Source: Bispira polyomma
Lineage: Eukaryota
Assembly (NCBI GenBank): GCA_965649765.1
Contig: OZ287752.1
Coordinates: forward strand, 41,168,001 to 41,232,000
Reading direction: 5' to 3'
DNA: 64,000 bases
The position numbers and the translations under genes were made by a program. Positions within the stretch are counted from its first letter, which is position 1. The number at the start of each line of letters is the position of its first letter. The notes under the pieces were generated by a model. That model did no database searches and had not been told where the DNA came from. It saw only the letters and a program-made list of their open reading frames with translations. This document shows positions 16,308 to 63,412 of this stretch, piece by piece.

Positions 16308-16392
16308 TCAAAAGTAAAAAGCTGTAGCAAAAGCTGTACTCTTTGGTCTTCCTGTGGAAGGTTCTAGATTTCTCCAGATCTCTTTTGATGAT
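16308..16392 (-). CDS. BHMT: BHMT copy B exon 8 (85 nt, terminal)
   Basis: [28 protein letters not shown]; aligns with BHMT KEYWENL..ASGRP. Confidence 0.9.
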
Positions 16393-19300
16393 CTGTAACA
16401 AGAACACCATGGTTGATGTAAAATATCTACCCTTTGGCTTTCTATAGTTTTAATGCAGAAAAAAAAATCCTTAAATTTCATGTTGATAAACATTGAAAAA
16501 TAATATATATTTTTGATATTATCAAGAGTTTTATTCATGAAATAAATATGTTTATATAGATATTGATATAAATATATTTGGCAATATATAAAATTACTAA
16601 GATGTACCTGTTCCTGAGTAAATCTCTGGGACTTGTTTCCAGACCAGACAGGATGTGGTCAAACTCTTGGGTAACTTCTGCTACTTTCCCACGTTCTTTT
16701 GTCAATTCTTCTGACATTGCCCTGTAAAGATATGGAACGATAGTCCATATTTAAGAGCTAAAAGAGCTGGATTACAAATGCTTAATGGATACTGTGTCTT
16801 ATTCAATTAATAAGCTGCATATATAACAATATACATTTGTTGATCATTATGTGTGTATATTTAGTTTAGTTATGCTACTAATACAATAAGATCGTTTGGC
16901 ATATGTGGCCCCTGAATAAAGACTGGCCTTATAATGGCAACATTGCTTCCATACCTTATGTGATAGGGTTCAAATCCACAGCATCCTCCAATGTATCTCA
17001 CACCTAGTTCGTAGGCTTCTCTGGCATACTTCTGGGCTTCAAATCTAGTAATCACCCTTGGCTCATATGCTGAAACCACCATACTAGTACAACTATTACA
17101 CAATCTAATAACAGCCAACTGAAAGACGAAATAATATGACAGTTTGATAATCACTTATCTGGCTGTTTCAATGTTGCCAGATCAAATCATAATATATATA
17201 TATATATATGTGATATATAACAAGGTGTTATATCGGTGTATGCATGCAATATTACTCTTCTTAAGAGAAAGAGGTACAATTTCTTGTTGTAGTTATAAAT
17301 GTTTAATTAACTTACAAATTTCATTATTTGTTACATGTAATGTGTTATATATTATATTGTTATCGCCTTGTTGTGGTCAACCGTGGCCTAGTGGTTAGGG
17401 ATTTGGTTGATGATGATGATGATCAGAAGGTCCTGGGTTCTATTCCCAGCACCAGCCGCTAGTTTCATTGGTGGGATAACATTCTTCGGCAAGATGTGTA
17501 CACATGTTTGCCTAGTGGCTTAGATGACCACGTAAAATGGTGGTCCTCTGTCACTGGGTCTTACCCCCAGTGGAAGGCTAAAGATCCTTGGGGACGTTTG
17601 TAAATGGTCATCCTCAAGCCTCTCTTTAGTTGGGGGAATGACAGTAACTGAGGCATTTGACTGTTGCAGTCAAGAGAGGGTTAATTAACTCTCTGAATAC
17701 CAGATGAAGGTATATATATAAAGTATATATCTAAATACAATACAATCAATACAGTAAATTAAAATGTTTAAACATACAACATGAAAATGTGTCAATTTAT
17801 ATCTGCATTAATATTTTTATTTAAAGTGTATTTAGGCCACAGGTAGATAGATATTCACGTCATTATTCCATGATACCAAATTACAATGAATCTGTAAATC
17901 TTATGCACATAATATAAAGAAGTAGCCAAAATAAGAGTCAATATAGGTTATATTAAGAGCCACAAACATGATTATAGACTGCCCAACCCCCTCACACGTT
18001 GGTTACGACAGTCAATATTATCTTGGTAAATTAATTTAATCCCAAAGGTCAATTAGCTTACACTTCAGCTAACGTATGTGTTCATTAAAAGGTGATAAAC
18101 AACATATAACATAGGTAAGAATATGGTGAATGTACTGGCAGTGTATTTACCCATATAGTTCTCCGGAGTGTGTAAATAGCCTTTCTTAGTCTCTATGTCT
18201 GGGGTAAGCAGTGCCAGTGACTGACACATTAGGTACGGCTTCAGGTTTTCCTTTTCTAGGGCTTCCTTCATCACTCTGATACTTTTCAATGAGACATTTG
18301 GTCCAAATGAACAGTTCACTCCAATGATATCAGCCCCTAATAACATACACAATATATTACAGAAAGTCAGTAATATAATTGAAACATTGTCCTGCAAAAT
18401 CTGACAATATTCAACTTCATAGCATTAAGATATGCAATAGAAGAAATTGGAACAGTATTTTTCAATAAAATGTTATGTGAAATGTAATGCCACAATATTG
18501 ACTAAACTAAAAGCACCCAACTTTAAATAACAAAATTAGAACATTTTCTGCAATTTATATTCATGGCTACTTTGTCTTATATACCAGCCACAACTATGGA
18601 CTTAATATTTTATTCCTAATTTATTTAGCTCTGACACCACTTTAATTTTACTTCAGCAGAGGTGAATGTTTACATTATGAATAAAGCTATCTATGGAGAC
18701 TTTATACAGTAGTAGTACCTGGCCACAGGAAAATATTTTACTCTAAATTGATAGCAGTATGTGACTATGGACAATACGTTCATATTTGTATATGACATAG
18801 AAATAACCTGCTTTAGCCATGCGAACGGCACACTCTGCTGTCGGTACATCATTCATATCTGCATGTGGACCAACACACATTGTTGATGCTACAGGTTTCC
18901 CAGTTTCTTTGGCAGCCTCTATGGCCCATTCAATCTCTTCTATTGTAGAGAAAAACTTAAGAATACATGGAAGTAAAGTAAAAATTATTATGACAACAAT
19001 CACAGCAGATTAAGTGTAATAGCCCAGTCACACCTACACATGTTAGAGCTACGTTTATGTGACGTTTTTAACTGTTTGGAAACCTAGTATAAAGGTAGTA
19101 GAAGCTAATGCCAAAGTGAGGATTCCTGGTGCGTTCGTTTGGTGACGTTACTTAATGGATGGTATCGTTCCGGAAACGTTTCCGTTTGGTCGGTGCGACA
19201 ATTATTTCAAACTGTTTGAAATAGTTGTGACAGAGCTCTCCATTTCTCGAGGACATCTCCACTCCTCTGTATAAGTAGCATAACGTAGCATAATGTAGCA

Positions 19301-22300
19301 GTAAATAGTGAGATCGTCTCCACTTGTCTGGTATTCGTCGTAGAACGTTTCACTAGGTATCATAACGCAGCCGAACGCACCAGTAAGTAACAGTACATAG
19401 TAGTAGGTAGTGATATCCTACCAATAAAGTGATCGATTTTTCCCCCACTTTTCCATTAAGATTACGCACCAGTAAGTAGCAGTACATAGTAGTAGGTAGT
19501 GATATCCTACCATTAAAGTGATCAATTTTTTCCCCCACTTTTTCCCCCCATCATCACAAAAACGTCACAAAATGTCTCAATCGACTGCACCTTGGTCAAA
19601 ATGACGTCACTTTGACACAAAACTACCCCGTTTTTAGATATGTAGCATTTCTACGTTGTGGGACGATAGCACGTTCAGGTGTAACAGGGCTATTAAGGTA
19701 AAAATTTATCTTATGTAATTATTATTATTAAATTTTTAATGCACTTTATTAATGCTAGGCATCTTCTAAAGCGTAACAGCAGAATCATTGATCAATTCAT
19801 TAAATCCATAGACATAGCAAAGGAACAAGGAAGTAGGAGCGTGCACGAGGGAAACTAATGTGGATAGGCAAGGTTTCAAACTTTTTTCTAAAACCGCTAA
19901 GTGTGTCAACTGGGCTGAGGTTGGGAGACTGTTCCATAACAATAGATATGCAGTGGAGAACGCTCTGGATCCCGTCTTCCTGATGGGACTGACCCAAGAG
20001 ACAGAGAGTCTGTTGCCTCTCTTGCGCTTACTGAAGGAGAGTAGGAGAGAAGGGAAGCAAGGTAGGAGGGCTGTTGAGTAACTACAGCCTTAAAAGTGCT
20101 AACATGAATCTTGAACAAAAGATGAGAATGAATGGGCGGCCAGTGTAATTTGTTGAGGTAAGGAGTGACGTCTGTGCGACAACCCAGGCAAAAAATAACC
20201 CTGAATAGGTGGTTTTAGATGGACTGGAGCTTTTTAATATGTGACTTGTTTGCTCCGTCCAGAAGAGAGTTGCAGTAGGCGAGGAGGCTACTCACAAGGG
20301 CATTAGCCACAGTTATTGCTGTGTTCATGGACAGGTGGTTTTGGATTCTTTTGATGTCACATATATGGTAATAGCATTTTTCTTGCTATAATCAATGTTT
20401 AGTCATACTCCTAATATAGGTCAAGAAGCGACAATTTCACAACATGGCATTTATCATCAGTTGATGGTGTGTTTCCAAGGATGTTATCCAACAATAATAA
20501 CCATTGAGACCTTCTGGTCATCAAACTGATTATTTCTCCAGCTGGGAGTCAAACCTGGACCCTCTGATCACCTGACCAACTCTCTAATTACTAGGCCACG
20601 AAAGAAACACATAGATATGAAATGTACTACTAAATTGCTTTATTCTTTTTTAATAGTTTTTGTTTTTACACAAAGACATACAGACAATGCACGATTACAA
20701 TATACACAATATACAGAAAACATAATTTGTATTGGAATGTCTGGAGGTAAGTTTCTATTCCAGTTGGATGTGATAGTTTAAAACTTTTTGTACCATGGGA
20801 CAGTTTCAAGAAATAGATAGGTTTCAATCCATTTATCCAGCGATGTTGGTGCTTGCATTTTTTTGTTTATAATCTGATTAGACTCAATGCATCTAATTTC
20901 AAACTAAACTTCTCGATGAATTTGTCTGTTTGTAATATCTGACCTTGATAGTTTGTTAGGTCTGCAAAAACTATTTTTTTTTGCATGAATTACAAATAAT
21001 TTTAGCTCTTTTGCTTGTACAGGTTTATCCTGTATACATATATATTTTAGTGTTTGGAGGAACAGCATGAAATTCTAACCAGCAATCAATAACTTGTTTA
21101 TGGAATGGTGTAAAACCCTTATCTGTGTGAAAGGCTGGCAGTTTATTTTTAATTTTATACTGCTGTATATTTAACACATACCATTTTAGGTTTTGCAATT
21201 TTCCTTGTGAATCTGATTTTGTAACTATTTTTTAATTCATTTAATTTTTGAGGTTAAGTGTATGCCGTAAATATCAGGCATTTCGAGACCTCCATTGAAT
21301 ATGGGGCAATTATGGTACCCTTTTAGATTTGTAGATATTCCCAATGTTTTAAAACGGTTTCAATTGATACTTATTTTGTTTGTCGTTTTTGATAATGTTA
21401 TACTTTATAATTTACATGTACCAATATATATATATTCCATATTGATTTTTAGACCAAAAGAATTCTCAAATTTACGTAAAAGTGCTATTAATTGAACAAT
21501 GGATTTAATATTATTTACAAATATTGTTGTATCATCAGCTAGTTGGCATATTTTATATTCTCTCTTCTCTATCCTTGTACATGCTATATTCTGATTATTT
21601 CTGATTTTGATAATTATAATTTCAGCTATCAATATAAAGAGGAACGCTGATATTGGAGATCCTTGTGTTATGCCCCTACCATATATTTGAAAAATAGCCA
21701 TTATTAATAACACAGGATTCTATTTTGTGTACAGTATTTTTATCCATTGCAAAAGTTAAAAGATTTTAATGTTCCGAAAAGGAATGGCCATTGAACACTG
21801 TCAAAAGCCTTTTCAAAGTCAACAAGAACTAGGCTTAGCACGACAGAGAACGGATGCATATTTGTATCCTCCGGAAAGACAAAGCACCCTAGGTAGCAAG
21901 CACCCTAGCTAGCACCCAAGGTAGAAGCCTTTGATTTCCTTTGGGGCATTTATGCTTAAGCCTTAAATGGCACAAGTGGGTTTCATATTGCAAACCTGTG
22001 GGACCAATAATAAGTGTGAGATAGGCATTTTAAAGTTGGCCTACACATTTGACCTTGAACGAGGGGTATAAGGTAATAGCTGACCATATCAAAACCAGCC
22101 CATGATTTCCTACAGGTTGGTTCACATCCCAAACTTGTACAACCAATAAAAAGCGATATATAGGCAAATTTAAGTTAGACCAAGATTGATGTTTAGTTAG
22201 GAGCCCAAAGTCAAATCAGATCACACCAAAAGATTCCCAGGCCTTGATTTCCTACAGGTTGGTTTTAATATTCAAAACCTCTAGAACCAATAGTAAGCAA

Positions 22301-25300
22301 GATATAAGCACGTTTAAGTTTGGCCATCCACATTTGGTCTTGAACGAGGGGCGCAAGGTTAAATCTGAGCACATCAAAAGATTCACAGTTCATGATTTCT
22401 ATAGTTTGGTTTGGAACTCCAAACCTCTGGGACCAATAATAAGTGAGATATAGGCACTTATAAGTTTGACCTAAAACGAGGATTCCCAGGTCATGATTTC
22501 ATATAGGTTGGTTTCACATCCAAAAACTGTTTGACCAAAAATAAGCAAGACATAGGCACTTTCAAGTTTGGCAATCTCTGTTTAACCTTGAAGGAGAAGC
22601 CAAAGGTCAAATCTGAGCACATCAAAATATTTCCTGCTCATGATTTCCTGTAGGTTCATTTCAGATCCCAAACCTCCAGGACCAATATTAGGCAAGATAT
22701 AAACACTATTAAGTTTGGCCAAAATCGGTCCCTTTTGTACTTTGGCAGCCTGTCGATGATCTTGAATGGGGAGATTCAAGGTTAAATGTCTGCATGCTTT
22801 TGCAGAACATATATATCTGTTAAACATATAACCCGTAAAGAGATTCAACCTTCTACAGCTGAGAAACAGACACAGTTAAAAGCCTGAATATTTTCAAAGA
22901 AACGCCTGTGGCGGCCATATTGTTTTTCAATGCAAAAAATATATACATCATGATAATATGCTCACTGTAAAAATAAACATTTTCATAATAATAAATTAAG
23001 GTTAACTTACTTTAAAACAAGTGTAAGTGTCATTTGAGGTACAAGATGACAAAACCGGCAAACGTTTCAAAATTTGTCAAGAAATAGAGTTAATTCAGAT
23101 ATTCATAAAGAAAATAATGGCTTGACAAATTATAATGCATATGTATTTATTATTTAATAAAAAATGATAGATTACAACAGTCACAATCAGGTATGCAGAA
23201 GTCTAGACACTAGCTGAGTTATATTTTGCAGAAAGACACTGAATATATATATATATATGTAAGTAGTATTTACTTTCACAAAACATACCTCACAAATAAT
23301 GAAGTCTACATCACAGTCTTTAAAAAAATTAAGATGACTTCTGAGTTCCTTGATGACCTCTTCCTTCCCTTTCCTATGGTATCTATAGGCCAATGTTTCT
23401 GAAATACTGATTGACACAAGGGCATCCCCAGTGTCAGCAACTTCTCTTGCCAGTTCAAATGCAGCTTTATTTACCTCTGAAGCCTAAATACAGATATACA
23501 AAGTATGATTAAGAGCTCATATATATGTACATTATACAATGTTACTCACTGCTTTAAAGTGGCATATGGAACAATAATAATATAGAACAAGAAAAATATT
23601 TTTATTTTTTTTTTTTTTAAATTTCATTTTTTATTCTCCAATTTCACACATCATATCATATAATTACAAGTACATAAATAGAAATATATATAAATCTTCA
23701 TACAAGCATAATTTGGTACATAAAGAAAGTAAAATAAAACAATTACATTTGTAAATACATAATAGTCAAAACAGTAGTTCACTGTACTAGGAAAACAAGA
23801 ATAAATAGGGAAATACACTCAAATACATATCAATACTATCAATCACAAAAATACATCTTCTATATATTTACATTAAAGAGCGTCTTCATATTTAACCAAA
23901 TTTTTTTAAATGTGTGTTCCCTTCCTTTTTCTTTATTTGCATAATATTCGTTTTGGTAGATATTTTCAATTTTATTTTTTAGGGTATGAAAGTTTAAATT
24001 TTCTTTGTTTATAGCACATGAGAAAATATAATGTTTAGTTGCTATTATAATAACAAGAAAAATATAGTGAAAACATGCATTCAGTAACCAAATCATTAAG
24101 CAACCAGTGGCTTTTAAGAAATCACTGGTTAAAATTGGGCTAACTTAGGGTCAATTTATCACCAAACCGGACCCTAAAACAGACGTCCAGTGAACTGTAT
24201 TGGCTAGCTACATGGGCGATATTCAAAGATTTTGCACAAAAAGTGATGCAAACATTGTAATTTGATTAACTTTTTGGAACTATTTTTTTTATTTTGAAAT
24301 CCTTACTTAAAGTATGTTAACAAAGATAGGACTAAACTCATCCACCTTTTCATTCATATAATCCGTCAATGTCACCTCGTTTTTGCAGACAGTATAGCCC
24401 CACCTGACAAAATTTGCAAAATATCTATTTTCTTGAAACCATCGAAAGTGTGTATTTAAATATTGTAAATAAATGGATTAGTGAATTTTTTTTTATTAAT
24501 CAAACAAAATATGTGTCACTTTCCATGGGAGTTTTATATTTTAAAGTTTGTTGTCGAGATCATTCGCTCATGCACTCGTCCCACCGGATTTACGTTAGCC
24601 TATGTTAACCACGCAAGGCTGTCGCAATTATTTGATGCAAAAGTCCATGCACAAGTCTATTTTTTTTTATTACATCAAAGGCGTTGCCTATGTGAGAAAA
24701 GTGGTAGTTCCTTACTGTGGGCCGCTGGTTTCAGTGCAAAACCTTGATCAAGTGTATGCAGTGTTTCCTCCAGCGTTTCCAACTACCCATCCCAATATAA
24801 CCTAAACAGGTACTAGAGTGGACGTTAAATATCCAAATTCAATTCAATACATCAAAGGCAATAACCCAGAGATGCACATCAATACCTGTAAAGACTTGCC
24901 GCTTAAGCAACAATTCACGTAAAGTTACGTATTAAATCGCACACATTTGTATGCAAAGACGGTAATATTACGTGTATTACGTTAACATTCGTTTGGCTAT
25001 GTCAAACCACGTTATACTCTGCCACAAAGCTCTCGCAAATATTTATGTTAAACCATGCAACAATCTTACAGGTTTGCATTTCGAAATTTCAAACAGTTTG
25101 AACTTACAAATTTCTTGCGTAACATCTCCCACGTCAGGTTAAGTACTATCATGTCCAATACATTAAGTCCTGCATACTCCATGCAAACCCTACGCAAAAT
25201 TAATTTTCTAACAACTGTTAATGTGACGGCTGGTGGGACCAGGGTATAACTGTGTGCTTTTGCACTGCTAAAAATGGACACAAGAAAGTATGGACACTAT

Positions 25301-26411
25301 TTGTCACATAATTTTACAGGTTTCGCTATGTGAAGACATATTGTATGCAGAAACGAGATGATGGGTTTTATGTATGGGACAGTGTATGTAGTACTGTCAT
25401 CAAATTGATGAATGAAAGTGGCCAGAGTTTACCACACATCTGGGCCTCACCAAATGATATGAAACATCAGGGAAAATTCTTAACAACTGTGTCCTGATGA
25501 GGTGAATCCTTAAAAAATTAAAACATAGCCACATGTTTCGCAAAATCGGAAAACACCTGCATTAGCTTCTCAAACTTTACGATAGAGTTGTCAAACTAAC
25601 TTGGATCGACAAAATGAGAAAAAAAAAGAAAAATTTAAGCATAGAATAAATCTGTTTTTACACCGGATACATTACTTGTGGTCACAGAATCTAGTGTACA
25701 AACCGGTGAAAATGGAAAGAAATGCTATTTTAATATAAAGTGTCATTACCAAATATCCTCTGAACTGGGAAAAACAAATATTATGTGGTCATTTTATGAA
25801 AAAAATCTCTTTTTATATAAATGATATGCTTAATATTTTACTAATTCAAAGTTTTGCGATATGCAACATTTGCATTGGATTTAAAAAATTTAAAAAGAGT
25901 TTCCCGCCAATTTCATTATGTTGGTCTCCCATGTATCCAAACCTCCAGTCATTCCAACCAAAAGTCATGTTTCTAGCAGTTTTCAGATAAATGGTACATA
26001 ATATTTAACCTACGTTTATAGTTTTCTTTCCTTTGACATTGCTCCATCTCTTCGTTATGCTGTCTTCAGAACCAGCAAAGGTAAAAGCTTGCATAACGTC
26101 AGAACCATTGCGAAGAAACTCACGATGTAGTTGCTTGACTAGTACCACATATTAAAATAAAAAAGAGACATCAATAATATAGAAATTGAATTATGTGCTA
26201 ATACTGAATACAGGAACAAAATATATAAATGTTGTCAATAAATGGATAAACTATAAGCTATACCTGCTTCTGGGTGATTGACTGTACATTCTGGTGTAAA
26301 GACTCCAGATTTTACATAGCCCCTCTTTTCCAGTGCAAACACAAATCCACCATCTCCCAATACTGGACCCTCAGCCAGTCTTTCTAATAACCCTTTCCTT
26401 TTGTTAGCCAT
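16308..26411 (-). CDS. BHMT: BHMT-like gene copy B, complete, 8 coding exons, 371 aa
   Basis: Exons 26411-26264, 26138-26014, 23483-23289, 18955-18808, 18336-18151, 17069-16955, 16721-16608, 16392-16308 total 1116 nt in one open frame, all GT-AG. Zn motifs GVNC and [10 protein letters not shown] present; TGA at 16310-16308. Confidence 0.95.
16608..16721 (-). CDS. BHMT: BHMT copy B exon 7 (114 nt)
   Basis: [37 protein letters not shown]. Confidence 0.92.
16955..17069 (-). CDS. BHMT: BHMT copy B exon 6 (115 nt)
   Basis: [39 protein letters not shown]. Confidence 0.94.
17372..17705 (+). mobile_element. tRNA-SINE, family 2
   Basis: cgtggcctagtggttag (box A), gggttctattccc (box B); body gatgaccacgtaaaatggtggt...aaatggtcatcctcaagcctct shared with 62510-62790. 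Confidence 0.75.
18151..18336 (-). CDS. BHMT: BHMT copy B exon 5 (186 nt)
   Basis: [27 protein letters not shown]...[19 protein letters not shown]; first Zn-ligand Cys. Confidence 0.93.
18808..18955 (-). CDS. BHMT: BHMT copy B exon 4 (148 nt)
   Basis: [49 protein letters not shown]. Confidence 0.93.
19020..19692. mobile_element. MITE with Harbinger-like termini and an internal ~80-bp duplication
   Basis: TIRs TAGCCCAGTCACACCT / AGGTGTAACAGGGCTA with TAA/TTA flanks; cgcaccagtaagta...cccccactttt duplicated within 19376-19542. Confidence 0.75.
19718..20385 (-). mobile_element. L2/CR1 LINE 3' fragment
   Basis: [33 protein letters not shown]-like motifs; microsatellite tail near 19720. Confidence 0.82.
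20640..21826 (-). mobile_element. Tx1/L1-clade LINE RT fragment
   Basis: [29 protein letters not shown] and QLADDTTIF (ORF 21405-21713). Confidence 0.85.
21821..22800 (-). mobile_element. Helentron-associated (HINE-like) element with internal tandem subunits; inverted copy of 28334-29064
   Basis: atgcatatttgtatcc...caaagcacc..ggtagcaagcac..tagctagcacccaag is the reverse complement of ~28965-29037; repeated catgatttcctataggttggtttcacatcc/gacctt units. Confidence 0.75.
23289..23483 (-). CDS. BHMT: BHMT copy B exon 3 (195 nt)
   Basis: [33 protein letters not shown]...DVDFIICE. Confidence 0.93.
23600..24095 (-). mobile_element. 3' end of a Tx1/L1-like LINE with poly(A) tail
   Basis: [10 protein letters not shown]...IYQNEYYA...FKKIW C-terminal pattern; T-run at ~23605-23618. 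Confidence 0.6.
24683..24847 (+). mobile_element. 5'-truncated tRNA-SINE, family 1
   Basis: 12-bp TSD TACATCAAAGGC at 24671-24682 and 24848-24859; body shared with the 6129 and 38081 copies. Confidence 0.87.
26014..26138 (-). CDS. BHMT: BHMT copy B exon 2 (125 nt)
   Basis: [42 protein letters not shown]. Confidence 0.92.
26264..26411 (-). CDS. BHMT: BHMT copy B exon 1 (148 nt)
   Basis: [49 protein letters not shown]. Confidence 0.93.
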
Positions 26412-26899: not shown

Positions 26900-27860
26900 T
26901 TATTGTATTGTATTTGTATTGTATTGTACATTTTTAACGCACCTTATTGATGCTAGGCATCTCCTAAGGCGGAACATCAGAATCAATAAGCAAATAGAAA
27001 AATCGATAAACAATAGGTTGTAAGGATGAATGCGTCAACACCCAGGTAGAGGACTACAGAGAATAGGTGAGCCTGAAGAGATAGGTTTTTAACTTTTTCC
27101 GAAATCCAGAAAGTGTTTCAAGCATTCAACTGGAAGGCGGTTCTATAGCATAGGAACGGCGACCGAGAAGGCTCGAGATATGACCCTCTTAGTGGGTTTT
27201 TTAGAGGCTCTTTCCCCTTTTAAGGCTGCTGAATGAGAGTTTGTAGCAAGGAAGTGAGGCTGTTGGGAGACAACAGCTTTAAAGGTAGTTACGTGCATTT
27301 TAAACAGGATTTGATCGTGAATTGGAAGCCAATGGAGTTGCTTGAGGTATGGCGTTACATCAGTACGGATACCCAAATAAAAGATAACTCTACATGGATT
27401 GTTTTGAATGGACTGTAACTTGTTTATGTAGGAATTATTAGCTCCAAAGAGAAAAGAATTACAATAATCAAGGCAGCTACTCACAAGAGCGTTGGCTACA
27501 ATAATAGCAGTATCTATTGGCAGATAATTTGTGATTCTTTTGAGGTCACGAATGTCGTAGTAGCAGGAGCGTCAGATGTTGTTAATGATGTTGTCGGATG
27601 AAAAATGGTCGCCCAATTTGATTTTTTGAGTTGTAAGAGCAAGGTACGATTTAATCCAGTCAAGGACAGTACTATCAACACCAAACCACTGTTTTAGGGT
27701 GTCAAAGAGTAAGCCATGGTCGATAGTATCAAAAGCTGCAGAGAGATCGAGAAGGATTAGGGCGACAGTTTTATTACGATCCAAGGCAAGGTTAATGTCA
27801 TCACTGATTGAAAGTAGGGCACTCTCCGTAGAGTGAAATTTTATGTAGGCAGATTGGTGG
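26900..27860 (-). mobile_element. L2/CR1 LINE fragment with an internal deletion
   Basis: ORFs 27572-27784 (ALILLDLSAAFDTIDH) and 27143-27484 (LDYCNS, LHWLP, RAFSVAVP); (caata)n tail near 26900. Confidence 0.88.
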
Positions 27861-28029
27861 GAGAAAGGAATGGCAGATTTTCATTTGTGAGGGATATTGT
27901 TAGTGAAAATTTGGAGTTTCAGGAATGGATCCTATTAGGGAGCATCCTTGTGTATATGATAAATTTAAAATTAATCTGTATTTGTTAGTGTTATGTTGGA
28001 GTCACTCAGTCTATTAAGGGCACATTGAC

Positions 28030-33867: not shown

Positions 33868-33952
33868 TTAGTAGTAAAAAGCTGTGGCAAATGCTGTACT
33901 TCTTGGTCTTCCAGTGGATGGTTCTAGATTTCTCCAGATCTCTTTAGATGAT
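33868..33952 (-). pseudogene. BHMT: BHMT copy C exon 8
   Basis: [27 protein letters not shown] (TAA 33870-33868). Confidence 0.85.
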
Positions 33953-35023
33953 CTGTAAATACAAATAATTAACATCATAGTAATTATAATAAAAACAGAA
34001 ACGACGACAACAATATATTAGTGCTTTGTATTTTAATACATATGAATAGACTTTTATTTTTCAAATTTGAGTTATTGTAACTACCGTTGCTATTACTGAT
34101 TTGTTATGCTCCGCTGATGTTATTGTTATAGTCAGACCTCATACATTTTAATAAAAGAAGGTTCAAAGTTAAACCTGTCATCCTAAATAACCAGTTTTAT
34201 CATCCACTAGCATGTGGATGAAACAGTTTTGATGTGAAACTTGGTTGGTATAAATAAATAATGTCGATCAAATTGCCTGCAAGACTATAGACCCCGTATT
34301 AGGGAAACATTTGGAGAAATGGAAACCAAATAGGATGTTTTATCTTAATAGATATGTAAATGTGTTCATTTGTGCAAACACCATCAACGAAGATAGTCAG
34401 AACCCATGAAATACTTATTTAGGCAGAAAGGAACTGTTATTTACTTTCTTATTATATTTTAAAAAGCACAGAATTTGTGATAATGCATCCTCTAAAGCAT
34501 CCACAAGGGATAGTCATACAGAAAAATAGAACCACTCATCACGGGTCAATTCCTTATGTGGCATTCACACCGCCTTTCTCTCCCGTTCAGCCAAGTTCTA
34601 ATGGTCTTGAGTATATGGCAATGCAAGAGCGTGAACTAGGTATGAACTTGGACAGTGTGAATGCTACATTAGGTCACAGTAGACAACAGGAAAAACTGCT
34701 ACACATCAACTGAAAAGTCTGCTGCAACAAGCAATTCAAGTAATAGAGTTATTATCTTATGTCTGTCAGGTTTTGTACAAAACTTTGCATACCTTCTACT
34801 GGACGATATATCTTACAGGTAAAGGTACTGCACCAGTGACAATTATCACCAGGAATTAATTTTAACTGTTTTATCTAATGGGGTAGGGATAAGCAAAAGT
34901 TAATTGTGTGAAATGTGTGAAAATACTAAAAATTTGTTTCCAGTGAACTAATCAAAAATTGCAAATTAGTGAAATTTTCTTTCAGCTAAACTTGCCACTT
35001 TTTATAGTATTTAATTATGTAAC

Positions 35024-35137
35024 CTGTTTCTGAGTAAATCCCGTGGACTTGTTTCCAGACCAGACAGGATGTGGTCAAACTCTTTGGTCACTTCTGCCAC
35101 TTTCCTACGTTCTTTTGTTAATTCTTCTGACATTGCC
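35024..35137 (-). pseudogene. BHMT: BHMT copy C exon 7
   Basis: [37 protein letters not shown]. Confidence 0.85.
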
Positions 35138-35519
35138 CTAAAAAAATGAGAATACCATACTTGAAATAAAATCAAATAATAATAATAATTCAACAGCTAC
35201 ATATTATATCGTGATGGTCAGTTTATTGGTGGAGTTGTTTTTTACTCTTTAAATTACCGGCCTTCCCAAAGTCACTGTAAATTTCCCTACATACACTCTG
35301 GGATAGATAATCAAACTAGACTGCAGAGGTTGGAGGCGAGAGTGTTACCTATACACCATCAATGCTCCCATATAATTATAACGGTATTACTATTAAACAC
35401 TTTATTCAAATGGACTAATTGGCATCGTGTGTACTAAGCCTATGCTTTCTTTCAGCACATTCCGACGTCGGCCGATTTGCGTGTGTCCGATCCGATCCGA
35501 CGTCTGCCGATGTATGTCT

Positions 35520-35915
35520 TCCTTTCATCAGACATATGCTAAAAATTTGTCGGATGTTAATGTTCAAAATGGCATGGGAAAGGTTATTTTATTGTGATTA
35601 CAGTGAGTGCTTTTTTCCACCAAAATTCGATGAGAAAAAGATATATACAGTTAAGTAAGGGTACCCATTTTTACTTCCTGGTGTGTAAGCTGTGACGTAG
35701 CTACAAAACTGACGTCATGATGACGTTTTGTGACGAATTATTTACAATACAAGGAGGAAGTTAAGTGGGGTACCCATCTTTTAACCTTAATATCTGAGCT
35801 GTTTCTTAACAAATTTTGGTGGGGGAAAAAACACAGTAATCACAATAAAATAACCTTTCTCATGCCATTTTTAACTACAATATCCGACAAATATTGAGTA
35901 TGTATGGGATGGAAA
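35520..35915. repeat. Foldback MITE-like long inverted repeat (~160-bp arms)
   Basis: tttgtcggat...aaaatggcatg.gaaaggttattttattgtgattac...gggtaccc...acttcct is mirrored at ~35752-35915. Confidence 0.85.
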
Positions 35916-36114
35916 CTATACCTATGATAGAATTTTTGCAGCCATTTTGTTTCAAAATCATTTTGTTGTATATTTTTGAATATGCTAATCAGTAGACAGT
36001 GGATTGCTATTATACCTGTGAGTCTGACCAGTCAGATATCATTGAAGACTTGTTGTATTTTTTCATTTATACTTTTTTGTGTGCTTGCTTCTGGCATAAT
36101 AATTAGATTCTGAC

Positions 36115-36229
36115 CTTATATGGTAAGGTTCAAATCCACAGCATCCTCCAATGTATCTTACACCAAGTTCGTAGGCTTCTCTGGCATACTTCTCGGCTTC
36201 AAATCTAGTAATAACTCTTGGTTCATATG
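36115..36229 (-). pseudogene. BHMT: BHMT copy C exon 6
   Basis: [39 protein letters not shown]. Confidence 0.85.
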
Positions 36230-36666
36230 CTGAAACCATTACACTGCGCTATATGAACCAATAAATAATAAACACAATCTTCAATTATAATATTTAATTT
36301 GTTAATGGGGATATTTTTAATTTGGAAAGATTATATAATAGTAATTTTTTTTTCAGAATTTAAATTTTTATGTTTACACTTAGGGTACAATGTTTTACAA
36401 TTGCTTTATTTAGCAAGCCTCAACAATCTAAATAATTCAGTAATCATCTACACCTTCTACAGAACATAGTCTTCCAAAGCTAAAAATGACTTATTTTATA
36501 AACAGTTTTCTAGAAACCACAGTTTCTTCTGCACTCAGTGGTCAATTCAGTAAAATTTTAAATATCTATCATAACTGATACTGTCTCTTCTATGTAGAGG
36601 GTAATTGGAAGCTTTGTCTAAATAATGGGATAAATATTGATATATGTATAAAGGTACTGTATTTAC

Positions 36667-36852
36667 CAAAAAAGTTCTCCGGAGTGTGGACATATCCTTT
36701 CTTAGTCTCTATGTCTGGTGTAAGAAGTGCCAGTGACTGACACATGAGATATGGCTTCAGCTTTTCCTGTTCTAGGGCTTCCTTCATCACTCTGATACTT
36801 TTCAATGAGACATTCGGTCCAAATGCACAATTCACCCCAATTATATCAGCTC
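36667..36852 (-). pseudogene. BHMT: BHMT copy C exon 5
   Basis: [27 protein letters not shown]...KGYVHTPENFF. Confidence 0.85.
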
Positions 36853-37316
36853 CTAATAAAACATTGAATTTGTTAATAATTTGCATTTTCAGGCCTATAA
36901 ATAAGAAGTATTATTTTGGGACAAAAAGAGGGTCAATAATTCATGAAGATTCGACCATCGCCAAGTTAGGGACTCTGTTGAAAAGGCAGATGCAAATAGG
37001 TGAATTCCTAAGAGAGGTTGCATAGTCGCTAAATGAATTAGTGAAACATTGGGACAACTAGATCTGATATTACTGACAGATGTGAGTTATGTTAACTCTT
37101 TGGTTAACAGCTTCACACTATTCCTTGCAACTATGTGTTTAGACTATGATACTACTTCTTTGCCAACTTCATTAAAATAATTTTGATGAATTTACATACT
37201 GATGTGAGGCCTATAGAGAAAATGAGATGGATATTTAGCAATATAAGTACGCATATTTAAGGAAGAAGTCAGCAACTAATGACATTGCTTTCCCGGTATA
37301 TGTAACTCAAAAACAC

Positions 37317-37464
37317 CTGCTCTTGCCATGCGCACTGCACACTCCCCTGTTGGTACATCATTCATATCTGCATGTGGACCAACACACATGCTTGAGGCTA
37401 CAGGTTTTCCAGTTTCTTTGGCAGCCTCTATGGCCCATTCCATCTCTTCTATTGTAGAAATGTA
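37317..37464 (-). pseudogene. BHMT: BHMT copy C exon 4
   Basis: [49 protein letters not shown]; upstream reads ttcag-g-TAC. Confidence 0.85.
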
Positions 37465-37850
37465 CCTGAAACACAAAGATGAATATTAAGAAATTTTGTC
37501 CTTTTTTTTACATGAAAATATATAAAATGACTATCAATACCACATTTAAATAGCTAGATAAAGACATTTTATCTGCAACAGGCTCTTGGTGATAACAATT
37601 TAATATGGTGATAACAATTCAATATGGAATATTAATTATAAAATACATTTTAATCCCCATGTCATTTTTGATAAACTTCTTGTAGTTGTGGCAAAATCGT
37701 GACTCATTCTGAACAGATCACAGCCAAAAGAAGTTTATCCTTTACCATACCTTGCAAAAAAACACAGATAGATGCAACCATTCAAACGCAATACTCCTTC
37801 TAAACAGAATGTAGGTAACAGTAGGGAATATGAAGGTTAATGGGACTTAC

Positions 37851-55539: not shown

Positions 55540-55578
<39 letters not shown>
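55540..55578. repeat. (TA)n microsatellite about 110 nt past the copy D stop codon
   Basis: Direct observation. Confidence 0.95.
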
Positions 55579-55581
<3 letters not shown>

Positions 55582-55687
55582 GAAATATCCATTTTTTTAT
55601 GGTTTAGTAAATCAATAATATTATCAAAACATAAACGCAATGCTTAACATAATCTATGCTTGTTAAGATGGAAAAAGCTAAAACATT

Positions 55688-55772
55688 TCAGTAATAGAGA
55701 GTGGTGGCAAAAGCTGTACTTCTGGGTCTTCCAGTAGAAGGTTCCAAATTTCTCCAGATCTCCTTAGATGAT
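55688..55772 (-). CDS. BHMT: BHMT copy D exon 8 (85 nt, terminal)
   Basis: [27 protein letters not shown] (TGA 55690-55688). Confidence 0.9.
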
Positions 55773-58700
55773 CTGAAATAAAAATACAGGTACTAATAAT
55801 ACATAAATAATTGTGACACTACGTAAATACATGAGCTTAATGCATTACAATTTAGAACTAAGTAAAGCTGAACCATTTATTACCTTAAAAACACAAAATT
55901 GTTTTTTATATATGAAACGGATTGGTACCAAAAGGCTTGTCTTAATTGATTGACAAAAAAACATTATTGTAAGCCTCTGATTTTGTCACATGGACATGCA
56001 TTTTTCAAACGATCATATTAATTATATAACCTGTTTCTGAGTAAATCTCTGGGACTTGTTTCTAGACCAGACAGGATGTGGTCAAACTCTTGGGTTACTT
56101 CTGCTACTTTGCAACGTTCTTTTGTTAATTCCTCTGACATTGCCCTACACAAAAATATATTGGAACAGCAGGGGTATTATCTAGACATCCATATGACTTT
56201 TGTAAATAACTTCTGCACACACTAGATGTAATATGTGATACATAAATGGCTCCCTATAAGTGGAAACTTTGGTTGATCATTTATATATTAGTACTGTTGT
56301 GAATTTAGGTATTCCAAATGGAAATCTTGCATGAAGTCACGAGAGTTCACACACAAACAGTGGAAAATCTGATCGATAAAACTTCAGTTAGAATGTAGAT
56401 TTTAATGTAAACTGACCTGTTTAGAATCATCTGTGAAGGGATACAAACAGACGGGTAAAATATACTGCAGTGGTAATGCTGGTATTGGTATTCAAACTTA
56501 TATTTAGCACACCACCTCGCCTAGTCTATGATTCAAAGTGCCAATAAAGCTTTTTGACTCCGAAAGTAAGTTCAGCAAACAGACGTTTTATCAATCTCCG
56601 CCAGAGGATTTAGTCTGCAGAGGATGACTGTTTTAAACTGTGATCCAAGCTATTGCGTATCTGCCTGACCTAGGAATTTTAAAGCACACGAACAAAATTA
56701 TCAACTTTGAACTCAATTTTTGAGTTTATAGTTCAACTAAACTAAAAACTGTTGATATTCAAAATTCGGAGTATACGTTAAAACAATGTTCAGTTGTTGG
56801 CTCAGGAGGTGAGCTGAAAATATCACACTGGAAGCTGAGGAACTTTTGATTTAAGGGCCTTTGTGAAGAAAATGATTATTCCATGATTAGGAATAGCTAT
56901 TTGATTACTCTCTGAATGATGCTATTTATTGCAACCTTTGATTCCGTAGAGCTAAAAAAAGCAATGTTTATAGCAATGTGAGATCAAAATACCAACTTTA
57001 CTATAATTTCTGGTGACACAAAAACTGACTTCATACGTCGGAGTTTAAAGTAATACAGCCACAGGTTAGGTTTCAAAAAAGTTTTAATGCATTCCTAAAC
57101 AAATGTGTTTTACACTCGACCAGAGTTGCATTATTACTTCTGTTGTTGTGCAAGCATATCACTCCGCTGTATTGTATTATGGATTTTAAACGGGCCTTAT
57201 TGATGCAAAACGTATGATACCAAATGCATATTCTTTTCATCTGGCTATTGATTTAATATTGTGATTTTTTACCTGATGTGATATGGTTCAAATCCACAGC
57301 ACCCTCCAATGTATCTCACACCCAGTTCATAGGCTTCTCTGGCATACTTCTGGGCTTCAAATCTAGTAATTACTCTTGGTTCATATGCTATAACATAATG
57401 AATTATAAAATGGGGTTAAGTATATATTATTTTAATTATGAACAAAGAAATGTTTAATCTCTTTGAGATAAGTGTTCATGAATTCCAGCACAATCCGACA
57501 GCTGAATAAAATAAACTTATTTTCACCATATTAATGACAGATGAGAAAATCATAACATATAAAACATATTTGCACTAAAGCTTACTGCATCAATATGACC
57601 ATGTCTATTGCTACATTTATTTAATCCACTCAAATTGTAAACAGATCTGAATGCCCAAACAGGCATATTTCCAGCTTTCTTCTCATCAATGACCTTCATG
57701 AAGCCAGTTTGACCTTGAACCTTACCTGTAAGATTATTGAATCATACAGAAATACCCCAGTCAGTTCAATGGCATATGACTAAAATACTGGAAATGTACT
57801 TTATGACCCCCAACCTGAACTTGAATCTAAGCTCAGAGATGAACTTGGAACTTTTGGGGGTCCACAACGTGGTTCACAACCTAACCTTTAAGATTATACC
57901 GCACTACCGAAGCAATATAGTAGCAAGTTTGGTGTCAATCCAAGTACATTAGAACCTTTGAGTTACGGACATTTTGAGAAAGTGAGAATTTGTTTGGATA
58001 ATAGAAGGTCTGTAAAGTATAAATTGCATAATAGTATAAAACAATAGGAAAAAACTGTTTGTGAGTGACTTTCAATTGGTAAAATCTAATATTTGTAGTC
58101 GACATCTCCATGAGGGCCTTTCAATACAAAATTCTCTTAAGAATCATTCCAACAAATAAACATTTAAAATTATGTAAGATAACAGAAGATGATAAATGTG
58201 ATTTCTGTAAAGTATCAACAGAAACCATTGAACATCTCTTTTGGTTTTGTCCAGTGATTAACAATTTTTGGAAAAAATTATCTGACCGACTACAAAGGTG
58301 TATAGAGATTCAAGAAATGCTTAATCTCAAAACTGTATTGCTGGGACATACAAATATTAACAACGAGTTGCACAATCATATATTTAATATTGTAAAAAAA
58401 TATATCTATATTACAAAATGTAAAAAAGAAGAACTCAGAGTTGAACAACTAGTCAGACTTTTAAAATATTATTACAATATTGAAAAACTACTAGTTGAAC
58501 ATTACAACAAAAGCATAGACAAATTTAAACGTAAATGGGGACCTTTAGAACAATTTTTAACAGCATAAAATGAAAGATAGCCAACATCATTAAATAATTT
58601 TGGTCTAATGAAATAAAAAGTCAGTGGCCACATCGATCAATGTTGTGGGAGCCAAAAAAAAAATTTAAAAAAAATGAGTGTGAATGAAATTTGAAGTATA

Positions 58701-61700
58701 CTCTTTCAAGTGTTAAATTTGCAAATTTATGTAAAGTGTAATTGAATGTACATGTAGTTAAAAGTGCTTACACCGCATGTTTGTAATACTGTTATCATAT
58801 TCTGATGTGTTTTTGTTTTTTGAAAGATATGGAAACTTGTTTTACAGCTCTAGAACTAAAATGTCTCTCTGTCAATGCATTTAAAAATAAAAAAAATTTG
58901 GGTTTCTCCTGAAGTTACGATACCAACACTAATGTATAAACTCCCAGTCAGTGTTCTTAAATGAATGATGATTAAAGCTTGTGGAATAGCTATATTTTTA
59001 ATGTATAAACTATCTGGGTATCTTTTGTACACTGTGTTGTGTATGCCATTGTAAAGGGGTCAGTGGGAGGTTGCAACCTCTTTTCCTCCGCACTGTACTC
59101 TTCAACAAATGTTGATTTTTTCTTTTAAAAGGGGGAATAAACCATAAAATGATAAAAAATATTTGTATGAAAAACGGTTGTATGATAGAGGTTTTATCAG
59201 AACATTTTTGAGATATAACACAATATACTGAAAATGAGGTCAAAATTGCTCTATCTCGAGCCGTATTTTTTTGAGAAAAACACAGCACTTCAAGATGGCC
59301 CCCAAATCGGAATTTTTCGGAAAAGTTGTTATAGACTCTAAACAAGATGCCTTTTAGGCCGGAAATGAGGTCAAAATCTATCTAGCCCCATTCCCGAGAT
59401 AACAGACGTTTGCACTGGCAATCTTTACAAAAATTTAAAAAATTTTAATGAATAGGTGGCAAGGCATATGCATGCAAAATTACAGACTGATCCCTTCCGG
59501 GGTTCTGGAAAAGAAGATTGTCAAAGAAAGTGTACAGGAAGTAAAAAAAAAATCAGGAAATCTCTAGCACCTGTAGTTTAAGAGACGAAGCTGTTGACAT
59601 GGACACAAATATGTACGCGGATGCCAACCCATTGGAATAAGTCAGCTGACTTAAAAAAGAAAAAGAGAAAGTATGAGTTTGATTTACTATTTACATAAAC
59701 TTTTGTTGAAACTAAAATATATATCAATCAAATATCTTCTCACAGTCATTAGCTGTTTAGTAAGGTTTTATTCTTACCAAGAAAGTGCTCTGGGGTGTGC
59801 AGATATCCTAGGCCAGTCTCTATGTCTGGGGTATGTAGTGCCAGAGGTTGGCATATAAGGTAGGGTTTAAGGTCTGCTTTATCAAGGGCTTCTTTCATAA
59901 TCCTCATGCTTTTTAATACGACATTCGGCCCAAAACAACAATTTACGCCAACAATGTCAGCACCTGTAGCATACAAAACATACTTCACATTAAATGTTTG
60001 TTTGTAAGACATGATTTGAAGTTGTTTATTCTTGTACAACTGCCAGCCAGTGCAGCCATCTTACTTTCTGACTTCCTGATAGTATGCACCAAGCTGTCTA
60101 TGGTTGTTTTAGTTAAATCATACACATTTCAGCTCAGATTTATTTTATTTGTCCTTACCACATATAGATCCACACGTTCACTGGTGTTATTTTATACTTA
60201 ATACAACCATATATGCGAATTTTGTTGGGTTTTTACGTCACTTTTAACAGCTTAGGTCATATCATGATGGCCAGATTTAATGGTGAAACAAACCAATTCT
60301 AATGCACTGTAAACCACTGGCCTACGGCAAGTACCTGACAAACTTTCCTACATGAAGGGACAAACAGAATTTAAAACTACATTGATGATAGGCCAATGAT
60401 TGTAAAAAAGAAGCTGACTGTTTTAGATTGATGTTTGTATGTTACGGTGTTTATAATTAAGAACAGTTATGAATTTTTAAAATCTAACAATGACATAATT
60501 AAGCTTACAGGTTTATACTAGATTTACACTGGATGATGTTGCCCCTTTTTGTTTTGGGATGATGTATGAAATCTGTTAAGTATCGTAAATATACATCCCT
60601 TGCAAGACCTATTTCTGTTAATTGCCAAAAATTATATAAATACACCTGCTTTAGCCATGCGTACGGCACACTCTGCTGTTGGTACATCATTCATGTCTGC
60701 ATTTGGACCAACACACATTGTAGCTGCCACCGGTTTTCCTGTTTCTTTGGCAGCCTCTATGGCCCACTCCATCTCTTCTATTGTGGGAAAGAACTTGTTG
60801 TGTAAAATAGATTGAGAAAAAGTAAAGCATATTACTGTATTTTATAAATGGGATTACTATCATTTTCTGCAATGATGTGTTATTACATGTAGGTTACCAA
60901 ATAAGTCCAAAAGGTTATTGTAAAATTAATCTAAATTATAATAGCCTTTATAATATTCTGACAATATTATTTTCCATCAGCATTTAATTTATTCTGAAAG
61001 TTTTTGTGGCATTTTGAAAGAGACTCAACCTTCCATATAGATTTAACATTTAAGGTTGATATATATAATTATAGTTTTGCTATTGTATTAATTTAGTAGT
61101 CAGCTTTATAATTTAATGGGTGTTCCTGCTTTAGTTAAATTTTGAAACAATAATACAATAGCATGATGCTGCGGACAGTACAACAGCCTATATGCCATCA
61201 TGGTGGAGTGGGATACATAGGACGGCACTTATTCAAACACATACCTCTAAGTTGCCACGATGTACCACATCGCAAATAACATCCTAGATCTGCATATTTA
61301 CCTTGTTCTGTTCCCAAATGTATTGGATTATTTCTTGTCTTATGTCTTTTCCTTCACTGAACATGATGTAAGGTAAAGTAAAAAAGGGAAATAGGGGGAA
61401 ATATACCTACTTGGCAGAGGTAACTATTTAAAAAAAGTTTGAAATATGTATTATTTCTGAAACAATATTGTGAGCATTACCTCACAAATGATAAAATCTA
61501 CATCAAAGTCTTTAAAGAAATCAAGTTGCTTTCTGAATTCTTTAATGACATCTGTTTTTCCTTTTCTTTGATGTCTATAGGCCAATGTTTCTGAAATACT
61601 AACGGACACAAGGGCATTTCCAGTGTCAGCAACTTCTCGTGCCAGTTTAAAGGCAGCTATATTCACCTCCGGAGCCTTGTGATATAAAAAAATATATAGT

Positions 61701-63412
61701 AAAATAATGTCATAAATCAAGCAATTGTAATCACATGTTTACAGCATATTTATAAACATAAATGTAATAAAATGGTATCAAGTGACGCAGTCGTACAAAT
61801 TGATGGTCAAGTATAAAATTTAATGTTACAGTAGGAAGAAATATTAGAATTTAGTTTGTTATACTATAATGTACTGTATCATAAAATGAATGTAGCCTCA
61901 TAGATATTTACATACTTTTGGAAAATAGAAACAATCTTACATCTATCTTTTTTCCTTGGTCTTCCAAAGTCAACCTGGTCCTTATAAAATCACCCGTTCC
62001 ATAAAAAGTAAATGCTTGCATGACGTCAGCACCAGCTCGTAGGAATTCCCGGTGAAGCTGTCGAACTAAATTGGAATTAGAAGACAACAGTACTGTATGA
62101 AATAGGATATAAAGACTTTATGGAACAAGTTGCCTGTGGATATCAGATCTTCAAAATCACTACTAGAATTTAGAAAACAGCTCAAAACATACCTTTTTAA
62201 ATGTGCTTATAATGTTTAAAATTTTAATGATCAGCGCTTAGAGACACCTTATTTTGGTACACAAGAAGAATGTACATTGAAGAGACAGCTCTCTTAGGGA
62301 AACAGAATTGGCATTTTATTTGAAACAGAATTAAACCAATTTGGTTTGTTCTCCTTGAGTGTTCTTCAAAATACAATCATTACATAGAGATAGTATTTTC
62401 AGGGTCAAGCTTATAGCAATTTGAACAGCAAAAGTCAGGCTAGGACATGTCATTGCACATAAAATAATGAATTTCCTTAATTCGTGATTTCTAGATTATT
62501 GAGATACATTGTGCTACTGTGGACTAGTCGGTAACTCACTCGCTTAGAAACAGAAAGAACGTAGGTTCGATCGCAGCCTGGGTTAACCCAGTACCGGCAG
62601 ATATAGAGTAGCTTGGATGACCACTTAAAATGGTGGTGCTCTTCATTGGATCCTATCCCCAGTGGCAAAGGAACGTTGATAAATGGTCACCCCGCAAGCC
62701 TCTTTCTTCAGAAGAATAATAGTAACTGATGGTAGTTGGCAGTCAAAGAAAAGGTTAATTGCTGCGCATATATTTAATTACCAAAAGATTCTAAACAAAT
62801 ATATCAAGCTTATGAACCAAAGCCCACAAGTGATGTTAAATATCAACTCCTGGAAAAACTGCCCATAATGTGCAGGGTAGCAGTAAAAACATAAAAAAAT
62901 ATTTAGCAGCAGTATTTATATTCGACCTCTTCTGTAAATCTGCCGCTAACATGTAAGTCAAGAATAGGGACGACACATGGGTAGACAAAAATTAATGTTT
63001 CATTTTTTTTTTTTGTCAACTTTTCTTAGAACCATATTTTTTTTGTAATTTTATTATTTTTCATGTACAATATTATGCCGTTTATTACTTCTAGCAACAT
63101 TGTAAAGTTGTAAAAATCTTGGTACAATAAATCCACAAGCCCATATTGAACAGACTAGCAGTAGACCTGCCTCTTTTGTGAGCAGCAAACCCAGTCCTTA
63201 GGAACATTTTATCAGAAACTGTTACTGAGGGGCAAACTGAATTGTCAAGAAACAAATTCCTAACCTGCCTCTGGGTGATTGACAGTACATTCTGGTGTAT
63301 AGACAGCAGCTTTCACATAGCCCCTCTTTTCTAGTGCAAAACAGAATCCCCCATCTCCCAGTACTGGACCCTCAGCCAATCTTTCTAATATCCCTTGCCT
63401 TTTGTTAGCCAT
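55688..63412 (-). CDS. BHMT: BHMT-like gene copy D, complete, 8 coding exons, 371 aa
   Basis: Exons 63412-63265, 62065-61941, 61675-61481, 60793-60646, 59963-59778, 57387-57273, 56144-56031, 55772-55688 total 1116 nt, open frame, GT-AG. GVNC and GGCCG Zn motifs present. Confidence 0.95.
56031..56144 (-). CDS. BHMT: BHMT copy D exon 7 (114 nt)
   Basis: [37 protein letters not shown]. Confidence 0.92.
57273..57387 (-). CDS. BHMT: BHMT copy D exon 6 (115 nt)
   Basis: [39 protein letters not shown]. Confidence 0.94.
57995..58895 (+). mobile_element. Tx1/L1-like LINE 3' end (zf-RVT) in intron 5 of copy D
   Basis: ORF 58110-58568 [16 protein letters not shown]...CDFC...[10 protein letters not shown]...FW; A-rich tail near 58885. 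Confidence 0.85.
59778..59963 (-). CDS. BHMT: BHMT copy D exon 5 (186 nt)
   Basis: [27 protein letters not shown]...[20 protein letters not shown]. Confidence 0.93.
60646..60793 (-). CDS. BHMT: BHMT copy D exon 4 (148 nt)
   Basis: [49 protein letters not shown]. Confidence 0.93.
61481..61675 (-). CDS. BHMT: BHMT copy D exon 3 (195 nt)
   Basis: [33 protein letters not shown]...DVDFIICE. Confidence 0.93.
61941..62065 (-). CDS. BHMT: BHMT copy D exon 2 (125 nt)
   Basis: [42 protein letters not shown]. Confidence 0.93.
62115..62250 (+). mobile_element. L2/CR1 3' end fragment
   Basis: LWNKLP...[10 protein letters not shown] then cagcgcttagag tail motif. Confidence 0.65.
62510..62790 (+). mobile_element. 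tRNA-SINE, family 2
   Basis: gtggactagtcggta / ggttcgatc boxes; body shared with 17372-17705. Confidence 0.72.
63265..63412 (-). CDS. BHMT: BHMT copy D exon 1 (148 nt)
   Basis: [49 protein letters not shown]. Confidence 0.93.

Follow-up and report, generated by a model that had tools for sequence, protein, structure and literature searches.

Two conserved types of altered donor-side pocket in a divergent tandem array of BHMT-like genes from Bispira polyomma

The window analysed here is a 64,000-nucleotide stretch of DNA from Bispira polyomma (G000:C5:41168001-41232000 of a 1.04-Gb eukaryotic assembly), to which a 20 kb flank was added on either side. It has a G+C content of about 35% and its open reading frames are all short. 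Paralogous exon sets were found by a six-frame motif scan together with an all-against-all comparison of open-frame pieces, and gene models were built from their coordinates and splice sites (Table 1). Four genes resembling betaine-homocysteine methyltransferase (BHMT), named A to D, form a head-to-tail series on the minus strand, in the order D, C, B, A along the direction of transcription. Each is composed of eight exons, with GT-AG introns except at exon 4 of C, and a conserved acceptor is found immediately 5' of the ATG in the cluster genes. No additional BHMT-like copy is found within 20 kb of the window on either side. An earlier note on this DNA had singled out the range from the last base of the B stop codon (16308) to the first base of the D ATG (63412), and had claimed that the methyl-donor pocket is remodelled in B, C and D while the zinc and homocysteine machinery is kept.

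Single-exon scans with the Pfam profile of the homocysteine S-methyltransferase superfamily (PF02574) give 25.3 bits for exon 6 of both B and D, above the cut-off of 22, and 20.9 bits (B) and 22.0 bits (D) for exon 3. For exons 1, 2, 4 and 5, matches to human or rat BHMT chains have E values of about 1e-7 to 1e-16, and from these similarities A-D appear to belong to PF02574. The Pfam scans were made exon by exon; joined exon models were used for alignment, trees and the ratio of nonsynonymous to synonymous substitution rates (dN/dS).

BHMT is the textbook route for the use of betaine methyl groups, and the genome holds a canonical copy of it. A genome-wide search with the canonical BHMT P0243 located this gene on a different chromosome from the window (C2:20731192-20737830, plus strand, loci L011/L012). 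Exon identity to P0243 is 67-85%, and the gene retains all of W44, Y77, Y160, F261, F267 and H338 (human numbering). In an unrooted tree, the C2 copy is placed among the canonical BHMTs of other phyla. A-D, together with two genes of a second species (R1 and R2, described below), form a separate clade with 100/100 support and a long stem, apart from all canonical BHMTs. A-D also lack the C-terminal oligomerisation helix (about 375-406): they end near human residues 372-374, about 33 residues short (371-373 versus 406 residues). A-D are a divergent BHMT-like subfamily, distinct from the canonical BHMT of the same genome. The view that A is the canonical enzyme is rejected, since the canonical copy lies on C2 and A belongs to the divergent clade without the C-terminal helix.

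Human numbering was set by exon-wise phmmer alignments to the human and rat BHMT structures 4M3P, 1LT8 and 1UMY, and the residues at the pocket positions were taken directly from the codons. In these alignments the residues named in the earlier note fall at the places where it had put them. The zinc-ligand cysteines C217, C299 and C300 are present in A, B, C and D as well as in R1 and R3 of the second species, and the homocysteine contacts D26, G27, G28, F29 and E159 are kept in all of these except C. The codons of B and D bear out the retention of the zinc ligands, D26 and E159. They also bear out the substitutions reported at position 44 (W in A, F in B, Y in D), at position 77 (A in B, G in C, Y in D) and at position 160 (F in B and D, the F160 codon of B being the first codon of its exon 4). 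Two further claims hold as well: F267 is changed to N in B and C and to H in D, and the segment matching human LDMHTKP reads LETSPRD in all three. These two sites do not distinguish B-D from A, however, because A has T267 and LAGSTKE. At the five donor-side positions of canonical BHMT (W44, Y77, Y160, F261 and F267), B reads F, A, F, Y, N and D reads Y, Y, F, Y, H. A reads W, Y, Y, Y, T, thus keeping the first three, and has S338. Position 261 is Y in A, B and D versus the canonical F.

According to PMC9713302, the site binding the bisubstrate analogue CB-Hcy is formed by D26, G27, G28, W44, F76, Y77, E159, Y160, F261 and F267 (Evans 2002), so that the changed residues 44, 77, 160, 261 and 267 line the pocket, as the earlier note had supposed. 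The same source describes a resting enzyme in which the zinc has Y160 as its fourth ligand (Gonzalez 2004) and states that D26, Y77 and E159 mutants lose most of their activity (Gonzalez 2003). The earlier note had also held that each paralog carries a different combination of pocket residues. Instead, only two conserved types are observed: a D-type pocket with Y44, Y77, F160 and H267, and a B-type pocket with F44, A or G at 77, F160 and N267.

The positions concerned are nearly invariant in the canonical enzymes. As a conservation reference, 122 full-length BHMT-family proteins were aligned, of which 99 are canonical (W44, Y77, Y160). Positions 44, 77, 160, 261, 263, 264, 267, 268, 269 and 271 are 99-100% conserved in these 99 proteins, and B, D and R1 are changed at nearly all ten. 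W44 and Y160 are said to have been assigned to betaine binding by Castro in 2004, and a Y77F enzyme was reportedly inactive in the same work. In B, D and R1 the loop 263-271 is remodelled by the changes D263H/N, L264T, F267H/N, P268F/Y, F269L/M and L271Y. Sixteen positions of the zinc, homocysteine and potassium side (26-30, 45, 47, 72, 74, 76, 159, 217, 247 and 298-300) were compared in the same way. B is canonical at 16 of 16, in agreement with the claim that the zinc and homocysteine machinery is kept, and D has one difference, V30C.

C is a pseudogene. Its exon 1 lacks 29 codons (residues 27-55, including F29, V30 and W44), with the donor directly after the G-D codons, and the lost part was sought in intron 1 of C and not found. 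In addition, an in-frame TGA is found in exon 2, and AGG stands before exon 4 where AG would be expected, which means either a lost acceptor or a one-base frame shift. C, which the earlier note had counted as an additional enzyme, is therefore rejected as a third functional variant. The frame of C is otherwise open. The dN/dS of the C branch is about 0.24, not significantly above the value of about 0.17 for B's own branch, which suggests that the decay of C is recent.

B and D, on the other hand, are supported as intact genes under purifying selection. Their joined frames are open, and pairwise dN/dS by Nei-Gojobori is 0.13 for B-D at a dS of 0.76 (0.18 for B-C and 0.15 for C-D). Both pocket types are also found, under strong purifying selection, in a distant second species. 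When representative sequences were searched with exon 5 of B, mostly single-exon fragments were returned, and one of them (P0001) led to a 570-kb contig of ENA assembly ERZ22147071. Walking this contig (ctg30300l) revealed three genes in the same orientation (loci L005-L009 and L026-L028). R1 is an intact D-type gene of 371 residues with the same eight exons, GT-AG introns and Y44, Y77, F160 and H267. R2, about 11 kb downstream of R1, is a B-type copy that has become a pseudogene: exon 4 contains a stop and exon 5 has lost its zinc-ligand part; exons 1-2 of R2 were sought on ctg30300l and not found. R3, about 70 kb beyond R2, is an intact B-type gene of 371 residues with eight exons, GT-AG introns and F44, G77, F160 and N267. 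The dN/dS is 0.09 at a dS of 1.4 for D-R1 and 0.057 at a dS of 1.6 for B-R3. An intact exon 5 with N267 is found on another ENA contig (P0271). Because of the intact R1 and R3, the low dN/dS and this further exon 5, both pocket types are old and maintained.

These data bear on the possibility that the copies are non-catalytic or decaying, with the pocket changes reflecting loss of function in redundant duplicates or a structural role. The pseudogenes C and R2 and the loss of Y77 in the B-type would fit such a fate. However, the between-species dN/dS is 0.06-0.09 at saturating dS, the frames and splice sites of B, D, R1 and R3 are intact, and the zinc-ligand cysteines and homocysteine residues are invariant. 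We consider decay a highly improbable explanation of the two pocket types.

What the retained and the altered residues would mean for the reaction can be considered side by side. B-type and D-type proteins would remain zinc-dependent thiol methyltransferases, and the reaction would almost certainly be the conversion of homocysteine to methionine. A changed acceptor or a new chemistry, in which another thiol or a selenol is methylated or a methylated osmolyte is broken down by demethylation, would account for the alteration of both donor-side and adjacent conserved residues, and also for the missing C-terminal oligomerisation helix, which is missing in BHMT2 too (PMC11942099). It is nevertheless hard to sustain because every known homocysteine-holding residue is conserved (D26, G27, G28, F29, E159 and T45/E47 in B, D, R1 and R3), and we regard it as improbable.

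The donor sub-site of both types, in contrast to the acceptor side, would no longer accommodate glycine betaine as that of BHMT does. The hydrogen-bonding aromatics (the W44 indole NH and the Y160 hydroxyl group) are lost or altered in both types. The B-type has a small residue where BHMT has Y77, which is critical for activity, and its cavity would thereby be enlarged. New polar side chains would be presented by the facing loop, namely H or N at both 263 and 267, and Y271. From the loss of these aromatics, the loss of Y77 in the B-type, the new residues at 263, 267 and 271 and the precedent of a donor switch in this family, we infer that B- and D-type genes encode homocysteine methyltransferases that draw on a methyl donor different from glycine betaine, a proposal that we judge to be probable by a modest degree. 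Both types are probably working enzymes with a different methyl donor. Two isozymes with different onium donors would be the most likely outcome, for which dimethylsulfoniopropionate (DMSP), S-methylmethionine and bulkier betaines are candidates.

Several observations speak against a changed donor. First, the subfamily evolves fast: of 174 positions with 95% or higher conservation among canonical BHMTs, 47 are changed in A, 60 in B and 57 in D. With 27-34% of otherwise invariant positions changed, even in A, the enrichment at the donor site is only modest: the five donor-side positions 44, 77, 160, 261 and 267 are all changed in B (Fisher p 0.004), four of them in D (p 0.04), and two in A, where no significant enrichment over the 174-position background is found. 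Second, one aromatic residue is exchanged for another at 44, 160 and 261 in both types, which may leave a cage able to accommodate a trimethylammonium group, and Y77 is retained in the D-type. Third, B-type copies decay repeatedly (C here and R2 in the second species). Finally, the protein and codon trees disagree on whether the types predate the species split. The protein tree weakly unites B and C with R2 and R3 (74/77), but the codon tree groups the copies by species (approximately unbiased test, p 0.04 against the type clade). To be noted, at least eight type-specific residues are common to both species, and therefore an old duplication with later gene conversion at silent sites is favoured; parallel change may be an alternative.

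The retained aromatics at 44, 160 and 261 and the Y77 of the D-type would be expected if the reaction is unchanged and merely tuned. The substrate would then be betaine or a close analogue (dimethylsulfonioacetate), and the duplicates would serve dosage, tissue or stress expression, or an altered Km or inhibition in a high-osmolyte animal. The conservation of all homocysteine and zinc residues agrees with this, as does the fact that tandem arrays often represent dosage or regulatory subfunctionalisation. On the other side, a fully canonical BHMT is already present in the genome, and new polar residues have been brought into the remodelled loop 263-271, a state that is conserved across species. 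Furthermore, the B-type is without Y77, a residue whose mutation severely depletes the activity of rat BHMT according to PMC9713302. A tuned betaine enzyme is thus possible but, in our view, rather unlikely, and a donor other than glycine betaine is preferred.

A comparison with known systems places this proposal in context. Vertebrate BHMT (EC 2.1.1.5; 1LT8, 4M3P, 1UMY) and its invertebrate orthologs have in common with A-D the PF02574 fold family, the zinc triad, the homocysteine contacts, Q72, Q247 and G298 on the potassium side, and several intron positions. The array genes differ from them by the changes at W44, Y160, F261, F267 and loop 263-271 (and Y77 in the B-type), by the loss of H338 and of the about 33 C-terminal residues of the tetramerisation helix, by an identity of 53-60%, and by forming their own long-stemmed clade.

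Mammalian BHMT2 uses S-methylmethionine and lacks the C-terminal helix of BHMT (PMC11942099). Like the array genes, it is a tandem duplicate of BHMT in which the zinc and homocysteine site is kept and the helix is absent; its methyl donor differs from that of BHMT. BHMT2 is the best functional analogy, and a donor change in the B- and D-types would parallel its switch to S-methylmethionine. The origins are independent, however, since BHMT2 arose by a mammalian duplication. No gap is found in the 86-94 loop of A-D; over this stretch they exceed mink BHMT1 by 2 residues. BHMT2 itself reportedly carries a deletion in the 86-94 loop, as described by Szegedi in 2008.

Scleractinian corals also have BHMT-like paralogs (P0039, P0151, P0155 and P0159 among others, named 'BHMT1-like' or 'BHMT2-like' at NCBI). 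They resemble the array genes in Y160F, Y77S, W44Y in some, a residue other than F at 267, and the retention of all zinc and homocysteine residues. In contrast to the array genes, they form a separate clade nested among canonical BHMTs, carry M29 and T30, and have an otherwise canonical loop 264-271 (L267). Because the coral clade changed separately, loss of the donor side arose more than once in animals. A word search with coral P0039 found only canonical BHMTs and the coral clade, and no B/D-like proteins. A word search with B exon 1 gave 86 exon-1 fragments, in which position 44 is W in 75, F in four, Y in one and S in one, with five unscored.

Among more distant systems, E. coli MmuM, plant HMT and bacterial Bmt are likewise single-domain PF02574 proteins that transfer methyl groups directly from onium donors (S-methylmethionine, DMSP, betaine) to homocysteine; they are only distant sequence relatives of A-D. 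The donor is DMSP or betaine for a bacterial Bmt and S-methylmethionine for MmuM (PMC12366255). Our literature search turned up no paper on invertebrate BHMT paralogs, and the coral and B/D forms are uncharacterised there; Ganu 2015 contains nothing on pocket residues.

The array thus combines an intact zinc and homocysteine site with two alternative donor pockets that both species have conserved, in a genome that also holds a canonical BHMT, which makes it a natural experiment on donor specificity. To our knowledge, mammalian BHMT2 is the only characterised donor switch in animals. A possibly unrecognised animal route to recover methyl groups from other methylated osmolytes may be represented here. 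Judged from its sequences, the subfamily would be a variant of a known enzyme family, not a categorically new one, and a good case of enzyme neofunctionalisation. More tentatively, and with some doubt, it might comprise two unrecognised animal enzyme types, the B-type being without Y77, that make methionine from homocysteine with non-betaine donors such as DMSP, S-methylmethionine or bulky betaines that are plentiful in marine invertebrates. Together with about ten other genes (Table 1), these would then form a lineage-specific radiation of onium-compound methyltransferases.

Table 1. Positions of genes, exons, diagnostic codons and related clusters; window coordinates are used unless another sequence is named.
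Feature	Position	Strand	Remark
Gene A, exons 1-4	2004..8482 (8482-8329, 7188-7064, 5996-5805, 2151-2004)	-	intact, 373 aa
Gene A, exons 5-8	L001: 7540-7355, 6485-6334, 5307-5231, 4651-4564		before window start
Gene B	16308..26411	-	B-type, intact, 371 aa; joined frame open, introns GT-AG
Gene B, exons 1-8	26411-26264, 26138-26014, 23483-23289, 18955-18808, 18336-18151, 17069-16955, 16721-16608, 16392-16308	-	
Gene C	33868..44514	-	B-type pseudogene
Gene C, exons 1-8	44514-44454, 41762-41638, 38045-37851, 37464-37317, 36852-36667, 36229-36115, 35137-35024, 33952-33868	-	
Gene D	55688..63412	-	D-type, intact, 371 aa; joined frame open, introns GT-AG
Gene D, exons 1-8	63412-63265, 62065-61941, 61675-61481, 60793-60646, 59963-59778, 57387-57273, 56144-56031, 55772-55688	-	
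In-frame TGA of C	41758..41760	-	residue 57, exon 2; R or K in other copies
H-I-R intron of B	16955/16721	-	
H-I-R intron of C	36115/35137	-	
H-I-R intron of D	57273/56144	-	
Position 44, A	8365-8363	-	W
Position 44, B	26300-26298	-	F (TTT)
Position 44, C		-	lost
Position 44, D	63301-63299	-	Y (TAT)
Position 77, A		-	Y
Position 77, B	26076-26074	-	A (GCT)
Position 77, C	41700-41698	-	G
Position 77, D	62003-62001	-	Y
Position 160, A	2151-2149	-	Y
Position 160, B	18955-18953	-	F (TTT)
Position 160, C	37464-37462	-	Y
Position 160, D	60793-60791	-	F (TTC)
Position 267, A		-	T
Position 267, B	18160-18158	-	N (AAC)
Position 267, C	36676-36674	-	N
Position 267, D	59787-59785	-	H (CAC)
C217, B	18313-18311	-	zinc ligand
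C299/C300, B	16978..16983	-	zinc ligands
C217, D	59940-59938	-	zinc ligand
C299/C300, D	57296..57301	-	zinc ligands
Distant cluster	C1:37070001-37110000		L013-L016, about 4 genes
Distant cluster	C1:60750001-60790000		L017-L020, about 4 genes
Distant cluster	C2:1625001-1675000		L021-L025, about 2 genes

The exon structure carries a further mark of the lineage. An intron directly after H-I-R (about residue 305) is observed in B, C, D, R1, R2 and R3 but not in A or the canonical gene, and A has an intron 12 codons further on. The H-I-R intron, either gained or shifted in position, is a marker of the B/D lineage.

Elsewhere in the genome, three clusters contain about ten BHMT-like genes that are more distant. 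Their N-terminal exon matches human BHMT residues 12-75 (E 1.6e-16), but D26 is replaced by E and W44 by F; the CC zinc motif is retained. The layouts of the two C1 clusters are nearly identical, which suggests a segmental duplication; two copies in the second of them carry a stop or a frameshift.

Repeated sequences are found throughout the array. An apparent ninth exon (24678-24782 and paralogous places) was rejected as a dispersed repeat that also occurs outside the genes. This short repeat, with a 34-residue open frame, lies at the same place in intron 2 of A, B and C (6168-6269, 24678-24782 and 38175-38276), and further copies are seen at 66464-66565 and, twice, about 15.3-15.8 kb before the window start. 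At about 500-1350 of the window, open-frame pieces that are alike at a spacing of about 150 bp indicate a tandem repeat within intron 4 of A. Mutually similar open frames at 27146-27880, 19909-20385, 4133-4993, 29266-29619 and 51594-51904, in array introns and spacers, suggest fragments of a mobile element. In the second species, intron 5 of R3 carries a long interspersed nuclear element (LINE), and retroelement and integrase-like open frames lie between R1, R2 and R3.

The mitochondrial genome of the assembly was found as contig 75. Its COX1 (G000:C75:4864-6204, minus strand, locus L010) is interrupted by nine in-frame TGA codons into pieces of at most 72 residues, and these codons fit the invertebrate mitochondrial code.

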